Shown: positions 8,701 through 38,669 of the stretch, in pieces | How the letters are laid out: every line of letters begins with the position of its first letter | How positions within the stretch are numbered: the stretch's first letter is position 1 | From: Amoebophrya sp. A120 | Taxonomy: Eukaryota > Protista > Dinoflagellata | DNA length: 64,000 bases | Direction of reading: 5' to 3' | Assembly (NCBI GenBank): GCA_905178155.1 | Contig: CAJINV010000001.1 | Span: 13,842,664 to 13,906,663, forward strand | Program-made: the position numbers and the translations under genes | Notes under the pieces: model-generated | Database searches by the model: none | Told to the model about the DNA's origin: nothing | Seen by the model: only the letters and a program-made list of their open reading frames with translations

Positions 8701-11700
8701 TGTTCGTGGTCGCGGTGCTGGCGAAGTTATGGGCGCGCGACAAGGGGTATGCGGTTAGTAGGGGATTGCCAGGCACCCTACGTTCAGGTAAGTTCCGTCG
8801 CGACTCTGGCGTAAGACCCCCGCCCCCCCTCCCACCCTTTGCTTCTGTTGCAGAATAAGTCAAGGAGTTGCACTCTGACCGCCACGCACAAACTAAACCT
8901 TTAAGTTGTCGCCAGTCAGCAGTGACAAACAACTGGCCAATGGTTTGACATCTCCGGTCCGCGGCACTTGCCTTTTTCGCCCGTGCCGCAGGTAAGGCAC
9001 AAATGGTCCAGCCTCCCCTGTCCGGGTGGGGTTGCGGCTTAAGGGAGAGTCTCGCCCCTTAGCCCAAAGGGGTGCGTCGTCTCTTCCGTGAGAACAAAAA
9101 CTTATGGCGTAAAATGGGTCGGGTCCTGGGTCGTTCTGTATGCTGGGCTGTCGCGCTCGGCTTGCTGGCCGGGCTGTACTGATCAGGTGTGGTGGGTAGC
9201 TCCCGACTGGTTGGCACTTTTAATGGGGCGACTTGCCGTGGTAGCGCTCGGCTTTTGTATGTTGAGGTTGCCGAAAGTGCTTCCTCGCCCACCCCCCGGG
9301 GAGGGGATCCTTGACCTGTGGCGCTGGGTGCGGGTGTCCACTACATGACGATGATGATTTGTCTAGCCGATTCCCCATCTTGACTCTGGTGTGGGTACGT
9401 TTTTACTCAGGATAAAGCATGAAGACCGAGCTGCTCATTGACACGATTATGCGCGACCTGGAGGTCAAGCAGAAGCGGCGCGTGCAGGCCGCCGGTGCGA
9501 AGGGTGGCGCGCAAGCGGTGGTGACCAAACCTGACGCGATCCCGGGCGTGGTTGCTTTTGGCAAGACGAAGCCGCCCGCGCGAACCGGCACACCGACGAA
9601 CAGTAACAAGCCCGGGATGAAGCAAGGCAGCGCTCCGGGTGGAACAAAGCCCGGATCCGAAAAGAAGGGCATCTTGAAGAAGGACAAAGACGAGAAGAAG
9701 AAAAAGAAACGTGCGCTGGGCGCTCCTGCCGCCAGCCAGGTACCTTAGTTAATACATTTAGGGCATCACATTCTAGGTTACGCAGTCAGCATGCGGGCGC
9801 GCAACCTCGTGAGGACCGGGATGGGGGGACCACCATCTGTGGCCCCATCTTTGTACAAAAGGCTCCGACAACAATCGGAGCCTGTCCGTGACCAAGCCCA
9901 AGCGGTGGTCAGCGAGAGCGAGCGGGGAGGCGGCCACCCTCCCGCGGCCGCCACGCGCGCGCCCGCCAAAGCCACGTACCGTAAGGTGAAACCGTCGGCG
10001 CCGATCGTTACGTACAGGTTAGCCCTGGACGACCGGAGCGCGGGTCAAGCCGACCCAAAACCAAGACGAAAGTCTAACGAGGGACACCTCTGTGCGCCCG
10101 CCGTATACCGCCCCGCACCTCTGTGCGACGGTCCCAGCCCGAAACCCCCGGCTTCGGCGGGGGGCTAGTAGGGACTTAGGATGGAAGGCTGTGAAGTGCG
10201 TCGCGTGCATGAATCTGACAGACACTACTCCACGACACATGCAAGATTGACACACAAAGCGCAAGCATCACATACGAACGACACACACCAGCCGACCGTG
10301 TGGCACCTCTGTGGCACGGCTAGATAGGGACTGCGTAGCCACCTGTTCGCACAATTTGCGCGTAGGGCAATAGAGATCTGAAATCATGCAGCGACGTGCG
10401 TTTGAATGCCCATGGAGTGCTACCTCATTGATTTTGAGTTTGCCCATGCACGTGATCTGTTGATGCCTCTGCTTCTACTTCTACTACGAATGCTGATGGT
10501 TAACGTTTTGGCTTGACTTGGAAATGAAATGGCTCTGCACTACTTTGGTTTTTATCCAAACATTTACCACTTGATGCCTCTTTGGCTGTTTCGCCACTTG
10601 ATGTTTCTGCTTCCGCCAACGATGACGATGCTGCCTTTTCATTTGGAATTTGTTTGTGGCTCTGGAATGATAACAGCGACCATCTGATGTGCTTTTAAGT
10701 TAATAGTGCCCTACAACACACTCATAAAACTCAAAACAAACATCCGACGCTGATAGAGCAGCAAAAACTTCTTCCCTTCCTGTTTGGCAAACGAGCTTGC
10801 TGATCAACACCATACGAAATGGCGCAACCAGCAACGGCAAAGGATTACTTCAAGTTCGACGGACGGCTGTCGCTTCAGCCGCTGGGCTCGGATCTTGCGC
10901 AGAAGTTCCGGAACTTCTACCATGGCTACGACTGTGCCGGCCAGCAGGCAAAAGACGACCTGGGGCAGCTCTGTGAGCGCGTCGTAACTTCGGGGGGTGT
11001 GCAGGAGCTGACCGGACTGGACCCGGGCAACGTGTTCCAGCTGGACACGGCCACAATGACGTTTACACCGGCGCAGGCGGAAGTAGCGGCGAAGATCTGC
11101 ATGCTGCAGTTCTTCAGTGAGCGGCACGCCAACGACGGCGGCCTGTCGAAAGGATACGACATGGTCACGATGCAGAAGATGAAGGACTACGCCCTGGCGG
11201 TGCACAATCATCAAATTGCGGCGATCAACAAGCCGGGGGCTTGGACGGAACTGCTCAACACGGTCGCAGGGCAGGCCAACGCGTGGCTCGGCGTTGACAT
11301 CGACCCGGCAACGACCATCCTCATCCACACCAGCAACCAGCCTCCCACACATCAGGAAGCGATCAATGGCATGCTGGGAATCCCCAACCCGCCGGTGCCG
11401 AACCCGAACCCCAACCCGCCGCTACCGCCGGTGCTGCCGCCGGTGTTGAATCCGAACCCGCCCGTGCCGGGGCCGAACCCGAACCCGCCAGCTCCGGGAC
11501 CGAACCCGCCGGCTCCGGGGCCGAGCCCGCCGGTCCCGAACCACAACAACCCGCCGGCACCGCCGCCGGGCGGGGGACAGCAGAATCTCGCGGGAGGGCC
11601 AAACGCCGGCAACCAGCCGGCGTACATGACCATCACGCAGTCAATGGTGGATGTCCTCCGCAACATGTCGGGGCAGTCGGTGGCCGCCCCGACGAAGAAC

Positions 11701-14700
11701 AAGGTTAACTATGACGCCAGCAACCTGCACCCGGACCACGGCAAGCCGGGACATGGCGAGGTGCACACCCGCACGATGGGCGTGGTCAAGTTGACAGACC
11801 CAGTCAACCAGATCCATTGGAAGCTCAACCCGGACCCCCAGACGGCGAAGAGAAATTACGAGCTTGCGGTCGGACTCTGCTGCGACTTTAACCGCATGCA
11901 GCACTGCCAGGTGGACCACCATAATGTCCTGCTGGTGGCGGACTACGTGCAGCTCGAAGGGGGAACCTTTGCGCACAAGTTGGCGGAGGAAAGCCGCCCA
12001 CACTTCGTCGCCAAGTACAAGCTGGCCATCCTTCTCGCCGTCCTTAACGGGGTCTACGGAGAGAATGTGCTTGCGGGTTCTCGGTTGAAGCGCGCAGCCA
12101 GTGGCGTCGGGCTGGACGCCACACCGTCCGCGATCGAAAAGTGGCAAGGCGTGGGCAGCCTGAATGCCATGGACGTCAAAACGGTGGAGGACGTGCTGGT
12201 GGATGTCGCGGCCTTGCGCAACACGCGGGGCAATACGAAGCTGGACAAGGACTTCCTGGCAGGTTGCGACTTCGCGCCGGCCCACGAACTGCTTCAGCTG
12301 GTCAACCGCAGCCCGCAGCTGAAGATCGAGGACGCCCGGCTGGTGAAGTCAGTCTACACCCAAAACCGCTGGAAGCAGGTGGAGGACGCTTACACCGTGA
12401 TGAAGCAGTTCATTGCGGTCCACGACGGGCTGGAGGCCACGGCGGTCACGGATGCCCTGACCAACTTCAAGGTGCAAATCAATGCCATGAGCAAAACGGA
12501 CGCCCTTTGGCATGCCTTGCCCGTTGTGATCTTCCTGACCCAGCAACAGGAGGAAATAATCCGCATGTACGCGCCGCTAGGCGTCCCGACCCTGGCGGCG
12601 CCGATCCGCAGCGCCATGTTCATCGTCAAGCACGCCTGGACCCAGATCACCGCCCTTGTGCCGGCCCGCAAGGCGAGGTTTGGAACCGTCGCCAACCAGG
12701 ACAAGGACCAGGGGCCCAGTAGCTCGGACGATGACACTGTGGAGTCGGGGGACGAACAGGAGAAGAGCGCTGGCAGAAAGCCCCGTGGTGGCAAGCCCAC
12801 CGCGGCGGAGAAGAAGAAGGCGATGAAGCGGGAACGCACGACCCGCAGGGGCAACGGGGCGACGCAGCGTACAAAGCCGCCGGTGGATGACCTCAAGAAG
12901 GACGAGATGTGGGCCCGCATCGTGGACAACCATCCCACCGACCACAATACTGCCATCAACCGGGTCGGCAATGGCCCGGACTCGGGGGCCAGCGCACCGA
13001 TGCGCAAGAGGGACGTCGCGGACAAGATCCGCAAGGACCGGGGCGACCCGGTGTACCGCCGCTCTTGGGACAAGGTCGTAGACTGCTGCTGCATCGATGG
13101 AGTGTATTGGTTCGTGCGGGGAGGTGGCACGATCGAGCCCTCCTGCGTGGCGGAGAGCGAGAAGGCGGAGTGCGGCTCGCCGGACTCCTTCTGCCGAGCG
13201 TGGTCCAACCACAAGTGCAACCGCAGCGGAAAGTGCGAACGCCACCACTGGCTGAAGGTGAAAATCGAGAAGAAAGCGTGGAAGGAAGTCGTGCTGTCGC
13301 AGCGGGGGAACTAGTCAATGGGGCTAGCTCTAGGCATGGCCTTACCGCCTCACCTCTGTGGGACGGGCCGCCACCTCGACTACCTCTGTAGCGAGTGCCG
13401 CCACGCTTTCCACCTCTGTGGGGCGGGCCGTAATACAACCACCAACGGGGTACCCAGACGCGCAGTACGCCTGGAGCGCAAACGTGTTTCATGTAAGTAC
13501 TCGCACGCACCTTGAGCCACAAATTGAACACATGCTGCCCACAGGTTGTTTTTGAAAAAATTAAAAAAATTCAACGCGCTCGGCACTAGCTTCGTGTGGG
13601 GGCAGAACACGTAGCAGGCAGGCGCGCAGCACCCGCGCAACCGCGTACGACGTTGGTAGCAGGGCACCTCTGCAGTTTCTAAGCGTAAACGGCCCGCCAC
13701 CCTTGTGTGGCATCCTCGTACGTTTTTGTTGGTTCCCGAAACATGAAAATGGACAAATTCCCACCCTTTGCAGTAACATGAGTTGAGTTTCTAAGCGTAA
13801 ACGGCCGTGGCCCTTTTGTGCGGTTTTTTGCTGGTTCTCGTAACATGAAAGTAGAGAAATTCCCACGCTTTGCAGTGACAAAAACCGAGTTTCTAAGCGT
13901 AAACGGCCCGACACCCCCGTGCCGCATTTTCGTACGATTTCGTTGGTTCTTAGAACACGGAAGGAGACAAATAGCGACCCTTTGTAGTGTTAGCCTTTTA
14001 GTCTCCAAGCGTAAGCGGGCCACGTTTGTTGTAACTCGTTTGGCCCTTCTTTGCAATTAAACAGAACAAAGCAGGAGCACAGTAGATGCGGCCGCACTCC
14101 GCGTTTGCGGCGGTTGCCACCCGGCCGGACGCCAACCCCTTCGCCACGCAGGCCGCCGCGGGCCCTGAAGCTGCGACGCCGGGCACCGAGGAGTACCAGA
14201 AGCTACTCGATGCGGGCCTGGACGCGACAGTCAACTCCGCGGCCACACTGGAGAAGCGGGAACGGGTCTGGAAGCAATTTCTCCGCTACTGTGCCGCGAG
14301 GGCACCGCCAGTGCTTCCGGGCAACATTGAAGTGAGTCACTTCCGGTACTTCGGGCTGCAGCTGGCCGCCGACGGGGCGCCCAGTCCGAATGACACCATG
14401 GGGCAACTCATCATCAAGGCGATGGACACACCCAACGCCCTAGCACCGGACACGGCGGGGATGCGGGTGATGGAATTCGCCCGCTGCCGCAGGGACGTGA
14501 AAGCCGCCACACAAAAGAACGACCCGACGCGAGCCATCCCGGCATTCCTCACTGCAGATTTCACAACACTGCCGTGGCGGGCGGTGAAGCAGCTCGCGCT
14601 CATGATGCAGCTGGGCACGCGCATGGACACAAACTGCGCCATTCTGCCGGAGGACCTCCGCTACGAGCCCGACCGCCTGCTGGTCTATATTCGCACGGAC

Positions 14701-17700
14701 AAGGTGCGTAGCATGGAGAAGCGCACTGTGGCCATCGGTTGCAACTGTGCGCAGGAGGGTAGCAACGTCGACCGGCAGTGGTGCCTCCTCCACAACGACG
14801 CGCTGCGACCGGTGCCCCTGCCCATTCTGCTGAGCGAGTGGGGCGACGGGCATGGCAACGCAAAGCAGAAGAAGTTCCTCCAGCTCATGGGCTGGACACA
14901 GCAGAGCTTCCGCCGCTACCAAGCGCTAGCAGCCCGGTACTACATCGAAAGGCGCATGCTTACCTTCGACCTGACCGGCTGGATGCGGGGCCGGGGCTGG
15001 GGAAAACTCAGCACCTTCCTGCGGTACTCGGGGGATTTTAGTACCTGGAAGCACTACTTCGCGGAGCGCGCGAAGTGCATGCCGGTGCTGGGCGCCATCC
15101 GGCCGCATGCCGTGGCATCGGTGAAGCAGCTGGCCGCTCACCTACGGTTTTCCGGCGACGTCGTCTTCAAGGATGCAGCCGGCGGGAGCGACCAGGAGTA
15201 CAGTGGGTCAGACGGTGAGCCGGGGAAGCCGGCGGGGCAGGCACAAGAGGGACGGAAGCGCAGCAGTGTGCTGTGCGAGGAAGCGCTGGATCCAGTGGAA
15301 GACGAACCGTTCTTCAGCAAACGGGGCAAATCGGCGGTGCCGAAGCCGCACTACCTGAAGGTGCCGCATGGACTGCCGCCAGGAGTTGCGCCAGCCCTCC
15401 AGCTGGCAAGCGCGCCAGCACCCTCCACGGCCCGGCCCATGAAGACCAAGGCCGCGACGCACAGTAACCGCTCCACCGCTGGAACCAGACCCGCACTACC
15501 GGCCGAGAAGGTCGCCAGCGGCAACCTCTTCATGCACCAGGGCAGACATTACGTGAAGCGGATGGAAGTCTGCCCTGCCTGCCCTCCACATAACGTCACG
15601 AACCGCAAACACCTACGAGAGCCACCCTGTTTACGCGACAAAGCCGGCAAGATTCGCATGGCGGAGTAAAGCCACAGGGCGGCGGGATCCGGATGGAGGC
15701 ACCAGCCACGCGAACTTGGATTTGATGCAGCCTCCGCTGCGCCCGGTGTTGCCACCTCCGTGGAACACTGGAACACGGCCCGGGCCACCTCTGTGGCCGG
15801 GCAGGGGGACGCCTCGCTGCCACCTCTGTGGCACGGGCGTCACGGTGTGGTCCTCGCTGTGCGCCTCGCTGCTGTAGAGCACGGTTTGAATACTGGAACT
15901 TGCGAACGCTACAGACCCGGACCTTTTCTCGCCATTGTGAAGGGTGTGACTCACCAGACAGTACAGAAATAAACGCAGGAACTCCGGCGCCCCGACCACC
16001 CCAGCAGCGGGCAATTTGTGGAAGATTTGTGTTCCGACGAACGGATCACGTGTGAGCAGAGATCAGCACGGCAAATTTGTATCAAAATGAAATGACTCAA
16101 TCAGGTACCAGCAGGGCGGAAACGTGCGCTGGGCGCTCCTGCCGCCAGCCAGGTACCTTAGTTAATACATTTAGGGCATCACATTCTAGGTTACGCAGTC
16201 AGCATGCGGGCGCGCAACCTCGTGAGGACCGGGATGGGGGGACCACCATCTGTGGCCCCATCTTTGTCACCCCGTGGCCAGCCCTCGCCTTAGATAGTTA
16301 GGCCCAGGTAAGCGCCTATACTTAGTTTGTGTTTTGCCGGGCAGTTTCCTAACCCGATGCACGCCCCGAAGGCGGGGCGCGAGTTTAAAAAGAGCAGCCC
16401 CGGAGCCTCCGCTACGAATCCCGCTGGTAGGGTGAAGACCAACGGGCGGAAGCCTCCCAAGCTGCCCTCCCTGCACTGCCGCCCTGTTTGCAGCGACCAA
16501 CGGCGCGCGCGGACCGACCAGCGCGCAAAGCAGTATGTTTGCGTGCTATTTGAGATCCTCGCGTTAGCGTACTTTCACGGCCTTTATTGCGTGCTACAAT
16601 TCCCTGGACCTCCGTGTTGTTGTTGCCCATGACTTGCATGAAAGTTCGGTAGGAGCTCTTAGACCCTCGCGCATGTCACTCGTAGACAGTTAACTTCGGC
16701 CAGCATCTGTATCCCCTTGATCCGCAGTGTGGCGGTTGTGTTTCTACTAAACGACAGGTATAATACCAAAACATGGTCCACCCGACCTGCCCGGCCTCTC
16801 CGCCAGAAGGCCCGGAGACATTCGCACGGCCGTGCACGCAGCTGGCGCATGCGATCTACGAGGCGGTGCGATTTGTGCAAGCGGCGATTGTCATCGATAA
16901 AGCGGCCACAAGACTGCGGGACCGGCTCAAGCAGAACATGCGGGACGCAAAAACGTCACCGTTCCACTGGAAGGAACGCCTCCGCACCGCCATCATTGAG
17001 CTCAAGGAGGTGCAGGCCCGCACGGAGGGACCAAATAAGCAGTTGGTGGAGCAAGACGCTCCGCAGCACCTTCGTCCGGTTCTGACCATGGACGGCATCA
17101 CCCGCAATGTTCTCGCAATGCGGGAGCTGATCGCCCTCATAGGGCACCCGGACGTCGACTTCCCGAACAGGGTGCTCAAGGGCTTTGAGTCGATAGGCAA
17201 CACCGACGCAACGGGCCTCTTCCCAGACGACCCGAAGGCCACGCTGCAAGGACCTGACGACGCCGCGCTCTTCTTCCAGGCCGGGGTAACCCTCCGGACG
17301 CACAAGCCGTCCGGCTTCCCCGACCACTTACTCGATGCCGTACTAGACGAACAACTCGCATTCGTAAAACGCGGGTGGAGCATCCCGGTGGACCCGGAAA
17401 AACTCATATGCCAGCCGGCATATGTATTTCCAAAAGATGAGTCCACGGAAGTGCGGCAGAAGGTGCGCTGCATCGTGGACAGCCGGGCGAAGAACGAGCA
17501 CTCCGTCCTGCGGGAGAAAATTTCTCTCTATGGCACGAGAGTGCTGCAAGAAGTGCTCGCGGGGCTGATGGCGCCCATCGGACAAGAGGGCGCGGCGGCA
17601 CGCATGCCGGTCACCACAACGTCGCGCGGGGCCAATGCCAGCATGCAAGAAAATCTGGCCGCCTACAAACAGTGGCAGGCCGACGGGGAGCAGCGCAAGC

Positions 17701-20129
17701 CAGCCACGCGGGCCCAGTTACTCGCCGGCGTCCGCGAGGCCAACGACCTCCTGCAGGAGGAAGCCACCAACCACAACGGCGTGGCGGAGGCCGGCTCGGA
17801 GGACGTCTCCAAGGCCTACCATCAACTGGGGGTAAGCAGGCCGGACCACTGCCCCATCGGGGTTTGGTCGAACTTGAAGGCGGCTTATGTTTATTTTTTG
17901 TCGGTGGTGTTGAGTTTTGGCTGCCTGCACTCCGTACCCAACTGGGTCCGTGCGGCGGAGCTTTGTATGGCAATCGGCATGCACTATGGTTTAATAACAA
18001 TAATATACGTAGACGATGCTTATTTCTTCGCATTAGATCGTGAAGGCGCCGAGCTGTCCCGGGCCCTCTTCCGGCAGATTGCGGCGACTTTGGGCATCGT
18101 CCTCAGCACCAAGCCGGGCGCGCAACAGCTCTCAACAGAGGGCAACTTCCTCCGAGCCCTGGGCATCCACTACCAGTGGCACAGGTCCGCGACCAACACG
18201 ACCATCCGCATCACGGTACCAGCGGAAGCGATCACCAAGGGCACCGCCGCCATTGACGCCCTCTTGCAAGAGACCCACAGCGGCAAGATGGTGCTAAAGT
18301 CGGTCCAGCGGGTCCTGGGCCTTGGTAACTACATCGTCTGCAATACGTACTTCCGGGCGGGCTCGGAGCTTTTCCGGCACCTGTACGACTGGGCGGTGGC
18401 GGACCGCTTTGAGCGGATGCGGGGCGACCGCAAACAGCGCCGCCAGCTGCAGTCCGTCCTGCTCGCAGTGAAGTCCCTTCTGCAGGTGGTGGTCCCCATC
18501 GACATCTCAAAACAGCCACGGCAGTCCCGCATCGCCTTTATGTGGCTGGATGCCTCGTCCGATGGATCGCCAAGCGGCGGGCCGATGGGGGGCGGGGTCC
18601 TCGTCACGACGGAGGGCGTGTTTGCGTTCTCGTACGAATTCCCGGTAGACCGGATCGCCCGGTGGTGGCCGCACAAGCTAACCATCGAGCACTACGAAAC
18701 CATGACGGCCAGAATCGCGCAACTCACCTGGCGCCGCCACCTCACCGGCGCGGCGGTCTTCGGCAAGATCGACAATAGCGGGGAGCTCTTCGCGCTGGTC
18801 AAATGCAGCGCCAAAAGCCAGCTCACCGCCAACCTGGCCGCCAACGTCGCCGTGGCCGCGCACTCGATGCGCATGGCAGTTTGGTGGGAATACGTGAAAA
18901 GCGAGCTGAATATCAGCGACCCGTTCACCCGGGCCGCCCTCATGCCAGAAGCAATCCGCACATTGCGGCCCACCATGTGCCACATTCCGGAGATCGACTG
19001 GCAGCGCGAGTTTGCCCCACCGCAACTCCCGCAACCTTACGCACTCCCGGAGGAACGCCCAACGAAGGCACGGAAGTGCAAGAAGAACTGAAGCACGCGA
19101 CAGGCGCGTGCTCACAGCACAACTTGAGCCTGAGTCATGTCCTGACGTCTCTGACGCGAACTCTCTTTTTCTGTATGTAGCAGCACGATAGTGATAAGCT
19201 TAGTTTCCAGCAGGTGCGTGGAGTTCCTCCTCGACGACGCAGTGGCCGGCGAGCCACCAAACCCGGCCTACCACCGGTACCGGCAACCCGTCACCGCCCG
19301 TCGCAACCTCTGTTGTGGTGAACTTGGATTTGATGCAGCCTCCGCTGCACCCGGTGTTGCCACCTCCGTGGAACACTGGAACACGGCCCGGGCCACCTCT
19401 GTGGCCGGGCAGGGGGACGCCTCGCTGCCACCTCTGTGGCACGGGCGTCACGGTGTGGTCCTCGCTGTGCGCCTCGCTGCTGTAGAGCACGGTTTGAATA
19501 CTGGAACTTGCGAACGCTACAGACCCGGACCTTTTCTCGCCATTGTGAAGGGTGTGACTCACCAGACAGTACAGAAATAAACGCAGGAACTCCGGCGCCC
19601 CGACCACCCCAGCAGCGGGCAATTTGTGGAAGATTTGTGTTCCGACGAACGGATCACGTGTGAGCAGAGATCAGCACGGCAAATTTGTATCAAAATGAAA
19701 TGACTCAATCAGGTACCAGCAGGGCGGAAGGAGGAGAAAAAAGCAGAAGAGCCGAAGCGCCCACCTTCCACCGGGGAGGAAACCAAGGTGTCTATCGGGA
19801 TCTTGTCCAAGGTGAAAAAGTGGGCACACAAGCAGAGCACTATGTCGTCCTGGGACGATGTGGAGGAGGATGAGGTGGACGAGGACGAGCTGGATCTGGT
19901 AAAGGAGTCGCAGAAAAACGCGAAGTTCCGCTTGGGGCTGCAAATCCGGACAAATCTGGACGAAGACGCGGCCGGAAACGACGCGCGGAAGCTGTCTCTG
20001 CGCCAGCGGTGGCGCATGGAAATCCGGGACATGGACATCGTCGCCATGAAACGCGACAAGAGCGACGGGCTCGAGTCGTTTGACGACATCAAGCGGCACG
20101 TGCAGCAGGGACGCTTTTTCGTTGGTTAG
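5756..20129 (+). CDS. Host protein of unknown function (~976 aa). Predicted exons 5756-6661, 6760-7956, ~8149-8234, 8390-8442, 9420-9708 and 19730-20129; last exon interrupted by the YR retrotransposon
   Basis: GT-AG intron 6662-6759. Probable intron 7957-8148. Removing introners 8235-8384 and 8443-9414 gives a continuous GDRYSVYRDVFDSLPNMMNTVESMKTELL. Removing 9709-19729 gives in-frame KDEKKKKKEEKKAEEPKRPP, running into ORF 19788-20129. Confidence 0.7.
8235..8384 (-). mobile_element. 150-bp introner, reverse-orientation relative of the element at 44212-44361
   Basis: TATGAACTGCAGAAGTATCG...CGATACTTTTGCACAGGATA termini. Imperfect 5-bp TSD TCCGT/TTCGT. Colinear with the reverse complement of 44212-44361 and the same length. 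Confidence 0.85.
8443..9414. mobile_element. 972-bp introner with perfect 32-bp TIRs and 5-bp TSD
   Basis: TATCCTGAGTAAAAACGTACCCACACCAGAGT at 8443 and its exact reverse complement ending at 9414. TSD AAGCA at 8438-8442 and 9415-9419. Excision restores VES-MKTELL. Confidence 0.9.
9709..9854 (+). repeat. Split direct repeat A1 (146 bp)
   Basis: Identical by eye to 16122-16267. Confidence 0.95.
10819..13314 (+). CDS. gag: Gag-like protein of the YR retrotransposon (831 aa)
   Basis: First ORF of the element. Pro/Asn-rich linker, basic region and a C-terminal C-x7-C-x5-C-x3-H zinc finger (CRAWSNHKCNRSGKCERHH). Confidence 0.75.
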   Translation: MAQPATAKDYFKFDGRLSLQPLGSDLAQKFRNFYHGYDCAGQQAKDDLGQLCERVVTSGGVQELTGLDPGNVFQLDTATMTFTPAQAEVAAKICMLQFFSERHANDGGLSKGYDMVTMQKMKDYALAVHNHQIAAINKPGAWTELLNTVAGQANAWLGVDIDPATTILIHTSNQPPTHQEAINGMLGIPNPPVPNPNPNPPLPPVLPPVLNPNPPVPGPNPNPPAPGPNPPAPGPSPPVPNHNNPPAPPPGGGQQNLAGGPNAGNQPAYMTITQSMVDVLRNMSGQSVAAPTKNKVNYDASNLHPDHGKPGHGEVHTRTMGVVKLTDPVNQIHWKLNPDPQTAKRNYELAVGLCCDFNRMQHCQVDHHNVLLVADYVQLEGGTFAHKLAEESRPHFVAKYKLAILLAVLNGVYGENVLAGSRLKRAASGVGLDATPSAIEKWQGVGSLNAMDVKTVEDVLVDVAALRNTRGNTKLDKDFLAGCDFAPAHELLQLVNRSPQLKIEDARLVKSVYTQNRWKQVEDAYTVMKQFIAVHDGLEATAVTDALTNFKVQINAMSKTDALWHALPVVIFLTQQQEEIIRMYAPLGVPTLAAPIRSAMFIVKHAWTQITALVPARKARFGTVANQDKDQGPSSSDDDTVESGDEQEKSAGRKPRGGKPTAAEKKKAMKRERTTRRGNGATQRTKPPVDDLKKDEMWARIVDNHPTDHNTAINRVGNGPDSGASAPMRKRDVADKIRKDRGDPVYRRSWDKVVDCCCIDGVYWFVRGGGTIEPSCVAESEKAECGSPDSFCRAWSNHKCNRSGKCERHHWLKVKIEKKAWKEVVLSQRGN
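13675..14021 (+). repeat. Degenerate tandem repeat (three units of 102-112 bp plus a partial fourth) between gag and YR
   Basis: GTTTCTAAGCGTAAACGGCC at 13675, 13787 and 13889, variant GTCTCCAAGCGTAAGCGGGCC at 14001. The intervening sequences are also similar (GGTTC, CATGAAA, AAATTCCCAC, CTTTGCAGT). Confidence 0.85.
14086..15669 (+). CDS. Tyrosine recombinase/integrase of the retrotransposon (527 aa)
   Basis: Catalytic motifs in order: LGTR (R), RTDK (K), QSFRR (H-x-x-R with H replaced by Q), RGW (W) and FLRY (Y). Confidence 0.8.
   Translation: MRPHSAFAAVATRPDANPFATQAAAGPEAATPGTEEYQKLLDAGLDATVNSAATLEKRERVWKQFLRYCAARAPPVLPGNIEVSHFRYFGLQLAADGAPSPNDTMGQLIIKAMDTPNALAPDTAGMRVMEFARCRRDVKAATQKNDPTRAIPAFLTADFTTLPWRAVKQLALMMQLGTRMDTNCAILPEDLRYEPDRLLVYIRTDKVRSMEKRTVAIGCNCAQEGSNVDRQWCLLHNDALRPVPLPILLSEWGDGHGNAKQKKFLQLMGWTQQSFRRYQALAARYYIERRMLTFDLTGWMRGRGWGKLSTFLRYSGDFSTWKHYFAERAKCMPVLGAIRPHAVASVKQLAAHLRFSGDVVFKDAAGGSDQEYSGSDGEPGKPAGQAQEGRKRSSVLCEEALDPVEDEPFFSKRGKSAVPKPHYLKVPHGLPPGVAPALQLASAPAPSTARPMKTKAATHSNRSTAGTRPALPAEKVASGNLFMHQGRHYVKRMEVCPACPPHNVTNRKHLREPPCLRDKAGKIRMAE
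15712..16121 (+). repeat. Split direct repeat B1 (410 bp)
   Basis: Matches 19320-19729 with one visible mismatch (G15741 vs A19349). Confidence 0.95.
16122..16267 (+). repeat. Split direct repeat A2 (146 bp), abutting B1 (circle-junction mimic)
   Basis: Identical to 9709-9854. Junction GGCGGAA|ACGTGCG. Confidence 0.95.
16773..19091 (+). CDS. Reverse transcriptase-RNase H of the DIRS-order element (772 aa)
   Basis: RT motifs VFPK, KVRCIVD, DVSKAYHQL, LSFG, YVDD and LGI. DIRS-type RNase H motifs WLDAS, IEHYE, IDN and YVKSELNISDPFTR. Confidence 0.92.
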   Translation: MVHPTCPASPPEGPETFARPCTQLAHAIYEAVRFVQAAIVIDKAATRLRDRLKQNMRDAKTSPFHWKERLRTAIIELKEVQARTEGPNKQLVEQDAPQHLRPVLTMDGITRNVLAMRELIALIGHPDVDFPNRVLKGFESIGNTDATGLFPDDPKATLQGPDDAALFFQAGVTLRTHKPSGFPDHLLDAVLDEQLAFVKRGWSIPVDPEKLICQPAYVFPKDESTEVRQKVRCIVDSRAKNEHSVLREKISLYGTRVLQEVLAGLMAPIGQEGAAARMPVTTTSRGANASMQENLAAYKQWQADGEQRKPATRAQLLAGVREANDLLQEEATNHNGVAEAGSEDVSKAYHQLGVSRPDHCPIGVWSNLKAAYVYFLSVVLSFGCLHSVPNWVRAAELCMAIGMHYGLITIIYVDDAYFFALDREGAELSRALFRQIAATLGIVLSTKPGAQQLSTEGNFLRALGIHYQWHRSATNTTIRITVPAEAITKGTAAIDALLQETHSGKMVLKSVQRVLGLGNYIVCNTYFRAGSELFRHLYDWAVADRFERMRGDRKQRRQLQSVLLAVKSLLQVVVPIDISKQPRQSRIAFMWLDASSDGSPSGGPMGGGVLVTTEGVFAFSYEFPVDRIARWWPHKLTIEHYETMTARIAQLTWRRHLTGAAVFGKIDNSGELFALVKCSAKSQLTANLAANVAVAAHSMRMAVWWEYVKSELNISDPFTRAALMPEAIRTLRPTMCHIPEIDWQREFAPPQLPQPYALPEERPTKARKCKKN
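19320..19729 (+). repeat. Split direct repeat B2 (410 bp), right terminus
   Basis: Copy of 15712-16121. Confidence 0.95.
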
Positions 20130-32489: not shown

Positions 32490-35400
32490 ATGACGTTCGA
32501 CATGGAGCTCGGGTTCCCCGCGGTGGCGGAGCGTGGCCGGCGGTTCGAGATTTTGATCCAGGACGGTGCCATAGCAGTACCCGGAGCCCATACCGATGTC
32601 GAGCGTCTCTACGGGGACCGAGTTACGCGCCATAGCCTGGTGCTGCAGGTCCCAAACATAACCATCTGGCAACTCACTTCCGGGCAACCAAGCAGCTCGG
32701 GCATAGAACTCGAGGGAATCGGTACTGAGTTGGATAATTTCTTCGTGCTTGTTTTTTTACCACTTGTCTAAGTTGACACGTTTTGCATTTTTTCTTGTTC
32801 TGTTGTGGCCGCGGAATGCAAGAATGAAGATTTTTAACAACGCTTGTCCACCACCCTTAGAAGTGGCCAATATCGATCGGAACATTAAGTACCGTTACCG
32901 ATTCGATACGACTAGAACATACTTCACTCTCACTAAAAAAATCGCCTCAGCTACCTTCGAGCGTCTGGAGGTTGGTGCGCAAGGGGTTTCCGCCGAAGTC
33001 CGCCGCGGGAAGAACAACGCGCTCTTCATTGACCTGACCGGCTTCGATAACCTCTCTGCGGGGGATCTACTGTCTCTGAAACACCGTGGGTATTTCCCGG
33101 TCCCGCTCATCCTTTACTACACCAGTGACCACGACGCCGAGCTCAGTAAGGCGCGCAACAGTACAGCCAGAAGTTCTTCTCGAAGTAAGCGAAAGACCAC
33201 TGCCAGCGTCGATGACGACGAGTGGGAAATGGTGCAGAAACTGCACCCCATTCACCTCGAGGCTTTCGTGCACATGGATTGCCGCGTGCCGACAAACGGG
33301 GACCACCCGGACGTCGCCTGGTACCGCGGTGAGTTAGACCGCCAGATTCCGCGACTCCGCAGCGCGCACACGGCTTTGGTGGCGGAGCACAAGAAAAGGA
33401 AAGCGGAGGAAGAGAAGAAGCAAAGACTAAGAGACCGGCAAATGCTGGAAGAAGAGGAAAGAAAGGCCACTATGTACGAAGAGGAACAGAAAAGGTACGA
33501 ATCAATATCAATTTATTTTACGCATAAGTACTTTTTACCAGAGTCAATGCTGTGTGATGTTCCTTTTCCGCATCTGTCTGTCGTGATTTTTCTCGAGTTG
33601 GTTGTTTGGCTCATCTTACTTCGCAATGATACGCTCTGCGACCACGACGACTCCACGTGAACATTCGCATCGCTGCATGATGCATTCATTTTATCGCCCG
33701 AGTGTGACCACATCTTCAAAAACTCAATCAGGTTGGCCGCGATGCACGTGAAGCGTCAGAGTCAGTTGGCGGAGATATATGCGGAGCAGCAGCGTACTGG
33801 TGAGATCGTGCCGACGCCGCGGACCGGAAACACTGGCGTCAACTACGGAAACCATGGATCCTTGCAGATTATGACGCCGCGGCTGCCCTCGTCGGGCTCC
33901 TCGTCTTCCATAAGAACGCTCAGCGTGCGGGGCGCTTCGCGCCACATCGACAAGGTGTCGGTCAACAAAATCGATCTGGCCGAAGTGAAAAGTCTGGACT
34001 TCAGAAATCCAGGGCCGATCTTGCACATCAGTATAATCTTCTTGTTCACCCTTAGTTCCTTGTTGCTTTCGTCACGTTTTCATCTTTGTTGAAATCGATC
34101 TAGAATAGAGACTTGTTCTATGTTGTACTAACACGTCTTAGCGACATACAATTCCAATTGCTACGCAGTACTAGCAAGGCCAAAGGACGATGATGTAGAT
34201 CATGCACTGTTATAAAAATTTCGCTCATTGAAACCACACGACCAGGTCACACGCCACTCGCGGGTGATAACGAACCTATTCTTGACTCGCCGAAACTCGA
34301 GCCGGAGCGGATGTTTTACATGAAGCGTGACATCGTGGAGCACCAGTTGCGGGCGTTGAAGCCCACCTCTGACCTGGAGGACGAGATTGCGCTGTTGAAG
34401 CTTCGCATCCTGAAGCAGCTGATTTTCAAGAAGGCGCACGAGATTTTGGGTACGACGCACGAGGAGCGCGAGGTCTACACCTACTGCGAACTTTTCCCGC
34501 GATTGTGGGATGTCGTCCCGGAAAACCGGTTTGCGGAGAAGCCGCCAAAGCTGGCCCGCGGCTCCATGATCGTGATGACCATGAACATGCTGGCCCGGGG
34601 TTTGTCCAGCGGGCCGGCGGGCGACCCGGAACTCCGGTACATCCCGCCGAAGCCGAAGATCGTGCACAGCTTCGAGGCACCCGTGCGCACCACCACGCGA
34701 TACGGCCGGACCGTGCACGTGGAACGACCGCAGGAGTTTGTGCAGAGCAGTTCTTTGCGGTATGACACACTGTACGAGGGCGTGAATCGACCGCACAAGG
34801 CCACCTGGGTGGGGGACCATAGTCCGCGCATGATGGGCATACCGGTGGAGCCCTTGAGTCCGCGGGAGGATCTCGCCAGAGGGGGGTTGTTGCTGCGCAG
34901 AGGAGCAGGAGCAGGTGGCGCAGCTGCAACTACCGGAGGAGACCACCATATCCATCTGGGCGGCATTATGGTACCCACGATCGGCGACCCAAATCTGGTT
35001 GCACCCCAAGTCAAGACGGATCATCTTCACGAGAATGTGCACAGCGGCCAGCACGTACCGCATTTAGACTTGCCCGCGCACCTTGCCGAGCCTCCCATAC
35101 TAGCGGCGGGCGCAAGCTCGGTTCCGGTGCCACACCACCTGAAGTTTGGCGGCGGTCCCCGGCAGCAGCGCATCTCGCTCGAGGCGAGCAATATGCTACC
35201 ACCGACCGCGACGCCGCGACCATTGCATCCGGCCTTGCAGAAGTTCTCCGGCAGCGCCAGGTTGCAACTCGACCGCACCCGACTGGCAAAGCCGCAGGTT
35301 GAGCTTAAGGAAGTGCCGAGTCTGTTGGACCTGAGGGCCAAGATGATGGATGCTGTCACTCCGCGCGACGGAATGAACTCCATAGTGCCTCCGCTTATCA

Positions 35401-38400
35401 TGCAGCTAGGTGGCGGAACAAACAAGATGAACGGTACGCGTCCGGGAGCGCCGCAATGGACGAAGAATATTCCGCAGGTCACACCGCGAGGGCTTTCTCC
35501 CCGCGAGGTGCAAATGGTGCAAGGGCCGGCAACTGTCCGGACCTTCGCGGAAGGGTACCACAGGATGAGCAAGGCATCACAGTTGTCCTCCAATCCTCCA
35601 GAGGAGGAGAGGTGGAACACCGAGGACCACGAGGAACACGCATCTGGATCACTTTCCGAGGACCATGATCTGCTTGTCAGCGACAGTACCAGCAAAGACC
35701 CGAAGCCCGCCGAACAAGGGGATAGCAGCGATGCACTGCAGTCCGAGGAGCAATGGCAAGACGAAGAGATTCTCGAAATTCAGGTGACCAAAGAAAGGTC
35801 GGATGTCGGAACAACTGCCGTAGCTGGTGTCCAACAAACGGCTTCCGCCTCCGCTTCCAGCAGCGCGGCCGCTGCAGCTGCGGCGGTAGAAGAGTCAGTC
35901 CCACTCCAGGATGAGGATGAGCTGCTTCACGCACAGTCTCCATCCATTACCTTCGCTCCCGGACCTGCGCACGAAGAGATTGTTGAGATCGAAGCAGCAG
36001 ATGCGCCAGATAGTGCACGTGTGTCCCCGAGGCACAACGACGGGGAACACCAGAGAGAGGCTGAGGACATGTCGATTACTTCTCTTTCCGCGGCATCAAG
36101 TCAGAAAGAGCAGCCGCAACAGCCAGCTGTCAACCAGCAGGAGGATGAACCAGCCGTAGAGGCGCAAAATTTCGTCGCAGAGGTTCTACCGACATCATCT
36201 TCGAGCGCTTGTAGCAGTAGTGATGAAAAGCGGGTAGCGCCTATAGTTCCCATGCTGCAGTTGAGCGACTCCAGCCGCAGTCGGCAAACCCCGGCTGGCA
36301 GCCCCACCGCGACAAACAGAAATACTACAGAATTTGTCTCGCTTGCGGAGGGGCACCACGCCACGCAGATCGAGGATCTCGAGCGGCTCGGATCTGCCGA
36401 GCAACTCTACGTCGACTCGGAGGACGACCAGCCGCACACCGCGCGGACCGCGGGCGTGAAGTTTTCCGCGCGCGCGCACTTGGCCTTGGCCCGGGAAAAC
36501 CCGTGGGTGAAGACGCATACGCACCACAAGCTCCCACACACCATTCACAAGCTGCGCAACACCCACTCCGTGCTGGTGCGCCCGCCGAAATCCCCCGAGG
36601 TACCGGAGCGGCCGTTCCAGCCCGACGAGTTCCACGTCAAGCGCACCGAGATCCTGGCGAGTAGCGCGATCACGCACGGGCCCTTCAACCACACCAACGA
36701 GGTCGCGACCCCGTTCCAGCACAGCAACGTGCTGACCGGGCGCAACACGTACGGGAAGAATCTAACCCGGGGCGAACTGCTCGGCCCCGAGGCTGCCATT
36801 TTCGCGTGGGAGCTGCGCAAGTTGAAAATTGTCGAGGAGGTGTTAAGAAACGACCCCACGGTGTTTGCGGTGCAGGAGTGCGACCAATACCACGACTTTT
36901 TGAAGCCGTTCCTGGCCGAACTCGGGTACCAGGGCATGTTCTGTCCGAAGTCCAACTCCGCGTGCCTGGAGCACGGGTACTACGCGGACGGGGTCGCACT
37001 GTTCTGGAAGTACGACGCGTTTGTGCTGAAGGAGAGGTACCGTGGGCTCACGTCCGCCGGGAGCCCCTGCGTGCTGGCTGTGTTAGAGTTTTACGACGGG
37101 GACCACATCGACAAGTCGATGCACGTCGCGTCGGAAGCCGCGCACCACGGCGGCAACGCCAGTCCCACGATCGGCGGCTACATGGTCCCGCAGGACCACA
37201 GCGCGAACATCGAGCACGGTGGCACCAGCCAGGTGGCCAAGCGGGCGCAGCTCGCGTCGCGGAACACCATCATCCTGGCCAACGCGGAGGACGGGGACAC
37301 ACCCCGGGTAACCACCCCGCGCATTAAAGTTTCCTGGTCCAACTCCTTCGGGCCGGATGTGCAGAGTCCTTTCAACCGCAACGGCTCAACGACCGCGGTG
37401 GAACTGCTGCCGGATACGGATGAGGACGAGGCGAGCAAGGTGGTGCGGGCGCGACGGGACGGGAAGAGAAGGGTGATTGAGTACGAGCCGGGCTACATTC
37501 CGCCACGAAAGTCGCACCAAATTGCGAAGAGAAAGCAAGAGGAGGGCGCCGGCCACTCGACGCCGCAAACGCCGCGGATGGTATCGGACATTGCCGGAAT
37601 GATGTTCGCGAACGCGCGCCCACCTAGGTTGAGTCGCGTGGATTCCCAGCTTCCGCCCGCGTCCACGCTGTTTTCCCGCACCGCGGAGGAGACCGGCCAC
37701 TTGCGCTACGGCGTCCAGCCGGTGCACGCGGTCCTGCCCGGAGGGAACACGGTGGAAACCGCGAAATCCATCCTGGATTCGGTGCGCGAGAAGCCGCGGG
37801 AGCCAATTTTGGCGCGCCCGTGCGAGGAAATTTCGCTGCCAGACTTCGGGACCATCTTTCAGGGCAGCGTCAAGCACATTCCGCACATTGCGGGGGCAGC
37901 AGGTGCCGCACCACACTTCCTGGACCAGCCGGCGTTGCCAAGCGTCAATCTGGGTGCGCCTGCGCAGGCGCCGGCACTACTTGGAAGCAAGACGCCTTCG
38001 AAGCACGACGAACACGTGAAGAGTATTGGCTCGCTGTCAGCGAAGGAGAAGGAGCGGCAGGAAAGGCGGAGCCAGGCCTTTAAGAAGCACAAAAAGGAAT
38101 ACATCATGGTCTGCACCACCCAGCTCCGTGCGGGCATCAACGAGGAGCTCCGGCGGGTGCAAGTGGAGGCAACCTTGGACCAGATGGACGTTATGCGGAT
38201 GGCATTTGAGTCCGAGTACGGCCGCAAACTGGACGGCACGGTGCTGCTGGGGGATTTGAACTGCAACCCGTTCGACCCCTCCGGTGCGGTGGAGACGGTG
38301 CTCCGGTCAGCTGAAAATTTCCAGTCCGCCTACGATTTGCCGGGCCGGGCGAAGGATTTGGTCACGTTCGGGGGCCCCAGTCGGGGCTTGAAGGTGCCGG

Positions 38401-38669
38401 GAAAATGCCCGGCGACAACCGTGAAGGCAAGCGGGAAGAAGGACATGACCGATTACATTTTCACCTCCGGCTTCAACTGTATCTCCCGCCTGTGGATGCC
38501 CTTCGAGGATGAGGCTGGGGATGCGGGCACGTCGCTGCCAAGCAAAGCCTACCCCTCGGACCACTTTGCGATCGCGGCGCAACTGTCTTTTCGAAAAGAC
38601 AGCCCGAGGACTCCCGCAACCACTCCCCCAAAAAAGAAGCGCAGTAAGCGCGAGGAGGCAAGGCGCTAA
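32490..38669 (+). CDS. Nocturnin/CCR4-like EEP-family phosphatase with an N-terminal extension and large insertions (~1,860 aa); exons 32490-32721, 32861-33494, 33732-34030, 34246-38669
   Basis: VMTMNMLARGLS, WELRKLKIVEEV, VQECDQY, FCPKSNSAC..DGVALFW, GDLN, DYIF and YPSDH motifs. Three phase-compatible GT-AG introns. Linking the upstream exons is an inference. Confidence 0.72.

Follow-up and report, generated by a model that had tools for sequence, protein, structure and literature searches.

A probable single-unit DIRS-order retrotransposon of Amoebophrya sp. A120, with its internal repeat junction upstream of the reverse transcriptase gene and candidate splice sites at its ends

Tyrosine-recombinase retrotransposons are the least understood of the retroelements, and the model of their replication rests on the position of an internal junction. 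In every group described in two papers (PMC4157794, PMC6681497) this junction lies downstream of the reverse transcriptase (RT) gene, as an initial annotation of the locus described here had stated for PAT and Ngaro elements in general. The locus is part of a 64,000-nucleotide (nt) stretch (the window) of the genome of the dinoflagellate Amoebophrya sp. A120 (assembly GCA_905178155.1, contig CAJINV010000001.1). It carries an element in which the junction of the internal repeats, B1/A2, sits between the tyrosine recombinase (YR) gene and the RT gene, with RT lying whole within A2..B2. We consider it probable that this is one autonomous retrotransposon of DIRS order, recently inserted in sense orientation into a lysine- and glutamate-rich stretch of host coding exon (Table 1). 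No link between Amoebophrya and DIRS-type elements was found in the literature searched.

The elements VIPER and TATE are alike in having three open reading frames (ORFs), for a gag-like protein, YR and RT with RNase H (RT/RH), in lacking a methyltransferase and in carrying split direct repeats (PMC6681497). This likeness is one of layout, and the hosts differ, being kinetoplastids in the one case and a dinoflagellate in the other. VIPER shares the gag-YR-RT gene order that was read at the present locus and that is borne out, together with the position of the whole RT gene in A2..B2. VIPER also has a short non-autonomous partner, SIRE, that matches one A..B interval (PMC6681497), as do the two short families M1 and M2 described below. 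However, B1, A2 and B2 of VIPER all lie 3' of RT, the junction coming after YR at the 3' end and A2..B2 being non-coding, whereas here the B1A2 junction (15712-16267) is upstream of RT and RT is inside A2..B2. Nor are splice sites reported at the VIPER termini.

Nematode Pat1 and Kangaroo, of the PAT group, resemble the Amoebophrya element in having the internal junction in the coding part and a gene between A2 and B2 (PMC4157794). Their gene order is gag, RT/RH, methyltransferase, YR, and the gene behind the junction, which falls between methyltransferase and YR, is YR; here it is RT/RH, and YR precedes. Ngaro elements are like the full copies studied here in their A1..B1A2..B2 arrangement and Cre-like recombinase and in lacking both a methyltransferase and a target duplication, but their RT comes before YR and their internal repeats are downstream of YR (PMC4157794). 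The initial annotation called the two-cassette form unusual and offered a new lineage as one of two readings of it. An RT gene behind the junction was indeed not found in the literature searched, although a coding gene within A2..B2 is already known from the YR of Pat1 and Kangaroo. The two-cassette form is thus a shifted junction and not a new principle.

A further comparison is with the introners for which the A120 genome is known (PMC7789003, PMC12130899). These too are mobile elements in coding exons with short non-autonomous copies in genes, and they are removed from the message, as the present element may be. The main text of PMC12130899 attributes them to elements with terminal inverted repeats, to LTR (long terminal repeat) elements and to those of non-LTR type, has tyrosine recombinases solely as Cryptons, and makes no mention of DIRS or Ngaro. 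The present element differs from these: it is autonomous and 10 kb long, its candidate GT..AG sites lie 34 and 17 nt in from the termini, and the segment left behind would be fixed and in frame.

Layout and repeats of the element

Comparison of the repeats and the map of ORFs uphold the layout originally proposed, A1-gag-YR-B1/A2-RT/RNase H-B2 with near-identical repeats (Table 1). The A repeat had been given as 146 bp, which is the same repeat counted without the shared GAA; with it the length is 149 nt. This GAA (16119-16121) is common to the end of B1 and the start of A2. B1 and B2 differ by a single mismatch in 410 nt (15741 G vs. 19349 A) and, with the A pair identical and three open, non-overlapping ORFs, the view that the genes are intact and the element young stands as well. 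At the flanks, ...AAAAA precedes the GAA of A1, while B2 ends in ...GGCGGAA and is followed by GGAGGAG. Self-comparison of the 64-kb window revealed no further similarity to the element anywhere else in it. Short GC-rich hairpins of the form CCAC-loop-GTGG recur in A (9830-9842, 16243-16255) and at several places in B.

Table 1 Features of the element and of the host exon that surrounds it (positions in the window)
Feature	Position	Strand	Description
Whole element	9706..19729	+	10,024 bp including GAA at both ends; limits from repeats and flanks
A1	9706..9854	+	149 nt; 100% identical to A2; first 34 nt end ...CCAG, followed by candidate GT donor at 9740
ORF1, gag-like (putative)	10819..13314	+	831 amino acids (aa); proline-rich middle, C-terminal CCCH-type zinc finger; no Pfam match
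Three degenerate direct repeats	13674..14018	+	about 102-131 nt each, 63-77% identity; between ORF1 and ORF2
ORF2, Cre-like tyrosine recombinase (predicted)	14086..15669	+	527 aa; two domains, disordered C-terminal tail
B1	15712..16121	+	410 nt; candidate AG acceptor 16103-16104; 17-nt tail; acceptor motif as in B2
Internal B-tail and A-head segment	16105..16152	+	48 nt, B1 acceptor to A2 donor; internal copy of both termini
A2	16119..16267	+	149 nt; identical to A1
ORF3, RT and RNase H (predicted)	16773..19091	+	772 aa; YVDD and DAS...E motifs
B2	19320..19729	+	410 nt; candidate AG acceptor 19711-19712; 17-nt tail 19713-19729
Interval skipped in joined contig	9740..19712	+	9,973 nt, GT..AG; would leave 48 nt of element in message
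Host coding exon	9419..9739	+	from ATG into A1 head, phase 0; 107-108 codons open
Host frame continuation	19713..20126	+	from B2 tail, 138 codons, phase 0

Among the features of DIRS order, a tyrosine recombinase, terminal repeats with an internal copy of their junction, and the lack of a target duplication are present, and RT with RNase H is predicted. According to the split-direct-repeat model of Goodwin and Poulter, as cited in PMC6681497, the internal B1A2 junction would serve as template for rebuilding the termini that the RNA intermediate lacks. Conservative recombination of a circle's B|A junction with the target fits the full-length copies, which meet their targets at an overlap of 0-3 nt (GAA in the window copy), with no long target duplication at the window, C11 and C5 copies (see below for these designations).

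Coding content

Pfam scans of all three ORFs (E up to 10) gave nothing useful, the weak match being to ALOG at 0.14, and PDB sequence and profile searches with the recombinase and the RT were blank. The C-terminal finger of ORF1 has the form C-x7-C-x5-C-x3-H, and family 2 (see below) retains a related motif; by position and zinc finger, ORF1 is a candidate gag-like gene.

For ORF2, a profile search over 1.8 billion representatives yielded 102 homologues, 66 of which were used for alignment. The closest named ones are from Amoebophrya sp. A25 and AT5.2, and the remainder come from marine metagenome contigs. Residues R179, K206, W305 and Y314 are invariant across the 66 homologues and R276 is nearly so. 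Among seven ORF2 copies from three families of the element, the invariant positions are G177-x-R179, D205-K206, S274-x-R276-R277, R303-G304-W305 and Y314. Position 273, in the HxxR box, is Gln in families 1 and 2; it is His in family 3 and in most of the 66 homologues. Pfam recognized Phage_integrase in two of these homologues and ALOG in one, and the Atlas clusters nearest to ORF2 carry Phage_integrase. The cysteines C219, C221 and C233 are also conserved and may bind metal.

An AlphaFold model built on an alignment of seven sequences was too poor (predicted local distance difference test, pLDDT, 39.6), and the 66-homologue alignment was used instead, giving a pLDDT above 90 over most of residues 50-350. 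With this model Foldseek returned Cre recombinase as the top match, over both domains and about 320 columns (E 4e-07, probability 1.0), followed by XerA, Tn1549 integrase and lambda integrase. The fold match and the catalytic residues together identify ORF2 as a two-domain Cre-like tyrosine recombinase. No integrase-like ORF was found among the element's ORFs, either in the ORF list or by Pfam, and on the predicted structure ORF2 is the tyrosine recombinase that replaces a DDE integrase.

The language-model (Atlas) clusters nearest to ORF3 carry RVT_1 and RT_RNaseH at 0.96-0.97, where Pfam and PDB were blank. Word-indexed searches for RT homologues, single and profile, returned two Amoebophrya-type proteins and no others. 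No methyltransferase was seen as an ORF or a Pfam domain in the element, Pfam having missed RT and YR too; since ORF3 ends 229 nt before B2, its absence is deduced mainly from the lack of coding room.

Copies, linkage of the two halves and short derivatives

Eight full copies in the A120 genome were compared, which fall into three families: the window copy and C4 (family 1), C11 and two copies at C5, C5a and C5b (family 2), and C10, C16 and C2 (family 3). C4 is about 89-91% identical to the window element in DNA, and its proteins are 95% (gag), 90% (YR) and 96% (RT) identical. The three copies of family 2 are 11.3 kb long, with RT 45% and gag 22-29% identical to the window element, and RT of family 3 is 35% identical to it. 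Self-comparison of C4 places one A at the 5' end and the other behind B1, with RT flanked by B on either side; family 2 has the same duplicated layout with an A of 240 nt and a B of 450 nt, and in family 3 a B of 405-488 nt stands on either side of RT. The layout is inherited in three diverged families. In all three copies of family 3, RT is split into two overlapping or adjacent frames of about 444 and 504 aa, suggesting a frameshift or a retained short intron.

Within a single copy the two A repeats match at 98-100%, as do the two B repeats, and between copies the identity is only 90-94% (94% for A and 90% for B between the window and C4). Each transposition therefore renews the repeats, in keeping with the split-direct-repeat model. 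An assembly artefact, or unrelated elements that are nested or adjacent by chance, has nothing specific in its favour beyond the general risk that attends repeats; it is refuted by the other copies, as the three families show the layout at eight loci spread over seven contigs and every copy has its own matched A and B pairs. The probability of this explanation is negligible.

The initial annotation raised the possibility of a bipartite, or segmented, element whose halves circularise and integrate separately. In this form the gag-YR and RT halves would be separate replicons, fused here by a recombinase that joins or inserts circles. All eight full copies have gag-YR before RT, and none of the other module orders that had been envisaged was found. 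If either junction of a two-junction circle could integrate, a permuted order would be expected in about half of the copies; none was seen. The halves also diverge in step: gag-YR and RT are 89.1% and 91.2% identical between the window and C4, 99.3% and 99.2% between C11 and C5a, 98.6% and 99.2% between C11 and C5b, and 94.3% each between C10 and C16. In protein searches of the genome, every RT match of the three families has YR directly upstream, and no solo half with intact genes was found. The single order, the divergence of the halves in step and their constant linkage lead us to conclude that the autonomous element propagates as a single unit, and for this element the bipartite reading fails.

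Solo units do exist in non-coding form, separately for each half, the gene-bearing ones being those that the genome searches failed to find. M1 (about 1.29 kb, at least eight loci) consists of A with about 290 nt like the A1-side sequence, about 90 nt like the sequence before B1, and B. M2 (about 0.87 kb, about 15 loci) has A with about 24 nt like the sequence after A2, about 33 nt like that before B2, and B. Both are about 75% identical to the window element, and between M1 and M2 the identity is 93-95% in A and 91-97% in B; their copies differ by 10-20% and have different flanks (loci among L006-L030, e.g. L006:1382-2667 and L025:1062-1934). Two such families, one per half, at different loci with different flanks, and a 5'-truncated copy (L001) with the 3' region of YR and B but no RT half behind it, are what separate replicons could leave. 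Single units can, however, also arise by RT template switching between A or B repeats or by recombination in place, and with the order, divergence and linkage of the full copies this makes separate replicons improbable. The dispersed single-half families indicate instead that one A..B unit suffices in cis, so that the cassette idea of the initial annotation holds for sequences required in cis and not for separate lives of the gene-bearing halves.

Two insertion signatures were observed. Exact insertions, with a complete A, no duplication and a target that mostly ends in ...GAA, comprise the full-length copies together with four to five of the short ones. Eight short loci have a target duplication of 26-56 bp, a 3' end that is exact at ...GGCGGAA, and microhomology at the left joint; their A head is trimmed to 1-33 nt (49 nt at one locus with an unclear duplication boundary), and GAA directly precedes the duplicated stretch in 5/7 of them. 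Loci flanked by duplications are L017, L019, L021, L027 and L029 (M2) and L006 and L009 (M1), and also L001 (3' part of YR and B, duplication of at least 55 bp) and L002, in which the A end is exact, an internal deletion is present, B is missing and the duplication is at least 41 bp. In the duplicated insertions, the recombinase may have made the exact joint at GAA and host repair the joint at the opposite end.

At one locus (L019/L004/L007; C28:246360-247874, minus strand) a family-1 deletion derivative, consisting of A, 63 nt and B, lies directly upstream of an M2 copy, with nothing between the two but a 43-nt stretch, which recurs on the far side of M2. Elsewhere in the window, a 1,452-aa ORF (34311-38669) has an endonuclease/exonuclease/phosphatase domain at residues 833-922 and may belong to an element of the long interspersed nuclear element type or be a host gene.

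Splice sites, host messages and expression of RT

Reads of three raw RNA runs and Logan contigs of one run (X3) were mapped to positions 13800-19790 (5,991 letters). One X3 contig, of depth 58.6, joins 9739 to 19713 exactly, with GT..AG at the ends of the skipped interval, its loose end being the upstream flank of A1. Depth is 11 for an unspliced contig across B2 and its flank, 0-11 in the element interior and 230 in the downstream exon. Host splicing from the donor in A (after nt 34) to the acceptor in B (before the last 17 nt) would remove 9,973 of the 10,024 nt and leave a 48-nt in-frame remainder. A second, weaker X3 joint (16157 to 19711, depth 6.4) has TT..TC ends and may be from another copy or a non-canonical splice.

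The sites recur across the families in different wording. Family 1 and the short families have the donor CCAG/GTACC in A and the acceptor ATCAG/GTACC in B, family 2 has GCCAG/GTATAG and TACAG/GTGGG, and family 3 has GCAAG/GTATAC and CTCAG/GTACC. In seven copies, drawn from the three families, the acceptor-to-donor segment measures 48, 48, 39, 39, 45, 45 and 45 nt; the sequences differ and the length is always a multiple of three. Host exons were translated separately and their phases compared by arithmetic (Table 1). A search with the downstream exon turned up no annotated host protein, probably owing to a length filter. At C11 a single phase is open for 68 codons upstream and 926 downstream of the element, at C4 for 297 upstream and 62 downstream, and C5a is outside any ORF. 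Same-phase ORFs also flank several short copies (285/429, 192/149 and 117/82 codons). The net exonised length at the eight duplicated short loci is 84, 90, 78, 87, 51 and 81 (in frame), 74 or 75 (ambiguous) and 92, which is in frame in 6/8 (binomial P about 0.02). The in-frame segment lengths and in-frame insertions point to selection acting on messages, and the joint and the recurrent sites suggest splicing at borders supplied by the element, which could then be removed from the host message as an intron. ORFs of at least 250 aa in the window are all on the + strand or opposite a longer + strand ORF, a bias that places the element in sense orientation within a one-directional gene array.

Several points weigh against reading the locus as an active DIRS-order element with spliced borders. 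With Gln273 in families 1 and 2, the activity of the recombinase is not assured; in family 3, no A1 turned up in the DNA examined around its loci; and the comparison with DIRS, Ngaro, PAT and VIPER is one of layout, not of RT and recombinase trees. The X3 run is only guessed to be RNA, and the three raw RNA runs had zero reads on the stretch, hence providing no test of transcript starts, ends or strand. A transcript covering all 10 kb is not demonstrated, since none of the X3 contigs spans the junction of B1 and A2. That the internal segment is free of stops in all three frames was discarded as evidence, 42-48% of shuffles being stop-free as well. The joint of 9739 to 19713 rests on a single contig, and the CAGGTACC repeats of 8 nt, one in A1 and one in B2, would give an identical sequence if the DNA between them were deleted.

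Such a deletion, or an excision footprint formed through these repeats in part of the sampled population, would suit the guessed run type, the eight letters common to both sides of the joint, and the palindromic GGTACC, recombinase cores often being palindromic. Yet depth along the locus varies from 0 to 230, uneven as in RNA and unlike culture DNA. The A and B motifs of family 2 have in common CAGGT alone, which is the splice consensus and too short to recombine. The multiples of three in three families and the 6/8 duplicated insertions in frame also argue against a deletion, which we hold to be very unlikely.

Splice sites near the ends may also bear on how RT is expressed. The B1 acceptor, upstream of RT, could yield a subgenomic RT message, either through cis-splicing with the donor in A1 or through addition of a spliced leader, which is present on 37.8% of A120 transcripts (PMC7789003). 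The shifted junction would be accounted for by this route no less than by a promoter in A2. If A2 were a second promoter driving a separate RT transcript, the junction would be upstream of RT for that reason; A2 is identical to A1, the RT start codon follows about 500 nt downstream of it, and one X3 contig runs from A2 into the RT side. No transcript start is visible, however, as the contigs show none and the raw RNA runs are empty, and besides the B1 acceptor, spliced-leader addition in dinoflagellates can cut messages from longer transcripts. A promoter role of A2 is rather unlikely.

With candidate splice sites inside the A and B ends, each A..B interval would be complete as a unit of insertion and splicing, the autonomous element consisting of two of these in tandem. 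It is conceivable, if rather unlikely, that each interval can move and be spliced self-sufficiently and that the element is a heterodimer of a gag and recombinase unit with an RT unit, the module acting in cis being an intron. The sense position in host transcription units would then place complete units in read-through RNA, from which single units such as M1 and M2 could be copied with no need of split repeats. Units could be separated and rejoined by the recombinase or through template switching of RT, and the tandem form would persist because the B1 acceptor gives RT a spliced message of its own.

For an autonomous element that propagates as one unit, a junction upstream of RT that is stable in three diverged families means that its position is free to shift as long as one B|A copy is kept. 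The lineage is also a natural test of whether both circle junctions are used, one order alone having been seen, and the two insertion signatures, one exact at GAA and the other with one exact end and a 26-56-bp duplication, bear on the route of integration. M1 and M2 provide SIRE-like partners for both halves. Splicing termini would extend intron-generating transposons to the DIRS order, and splice sites that leave an in-frame segment would let a 10-kb autonomous element live in coding exons even though the genome is compact and its gene arrays run in one direction.

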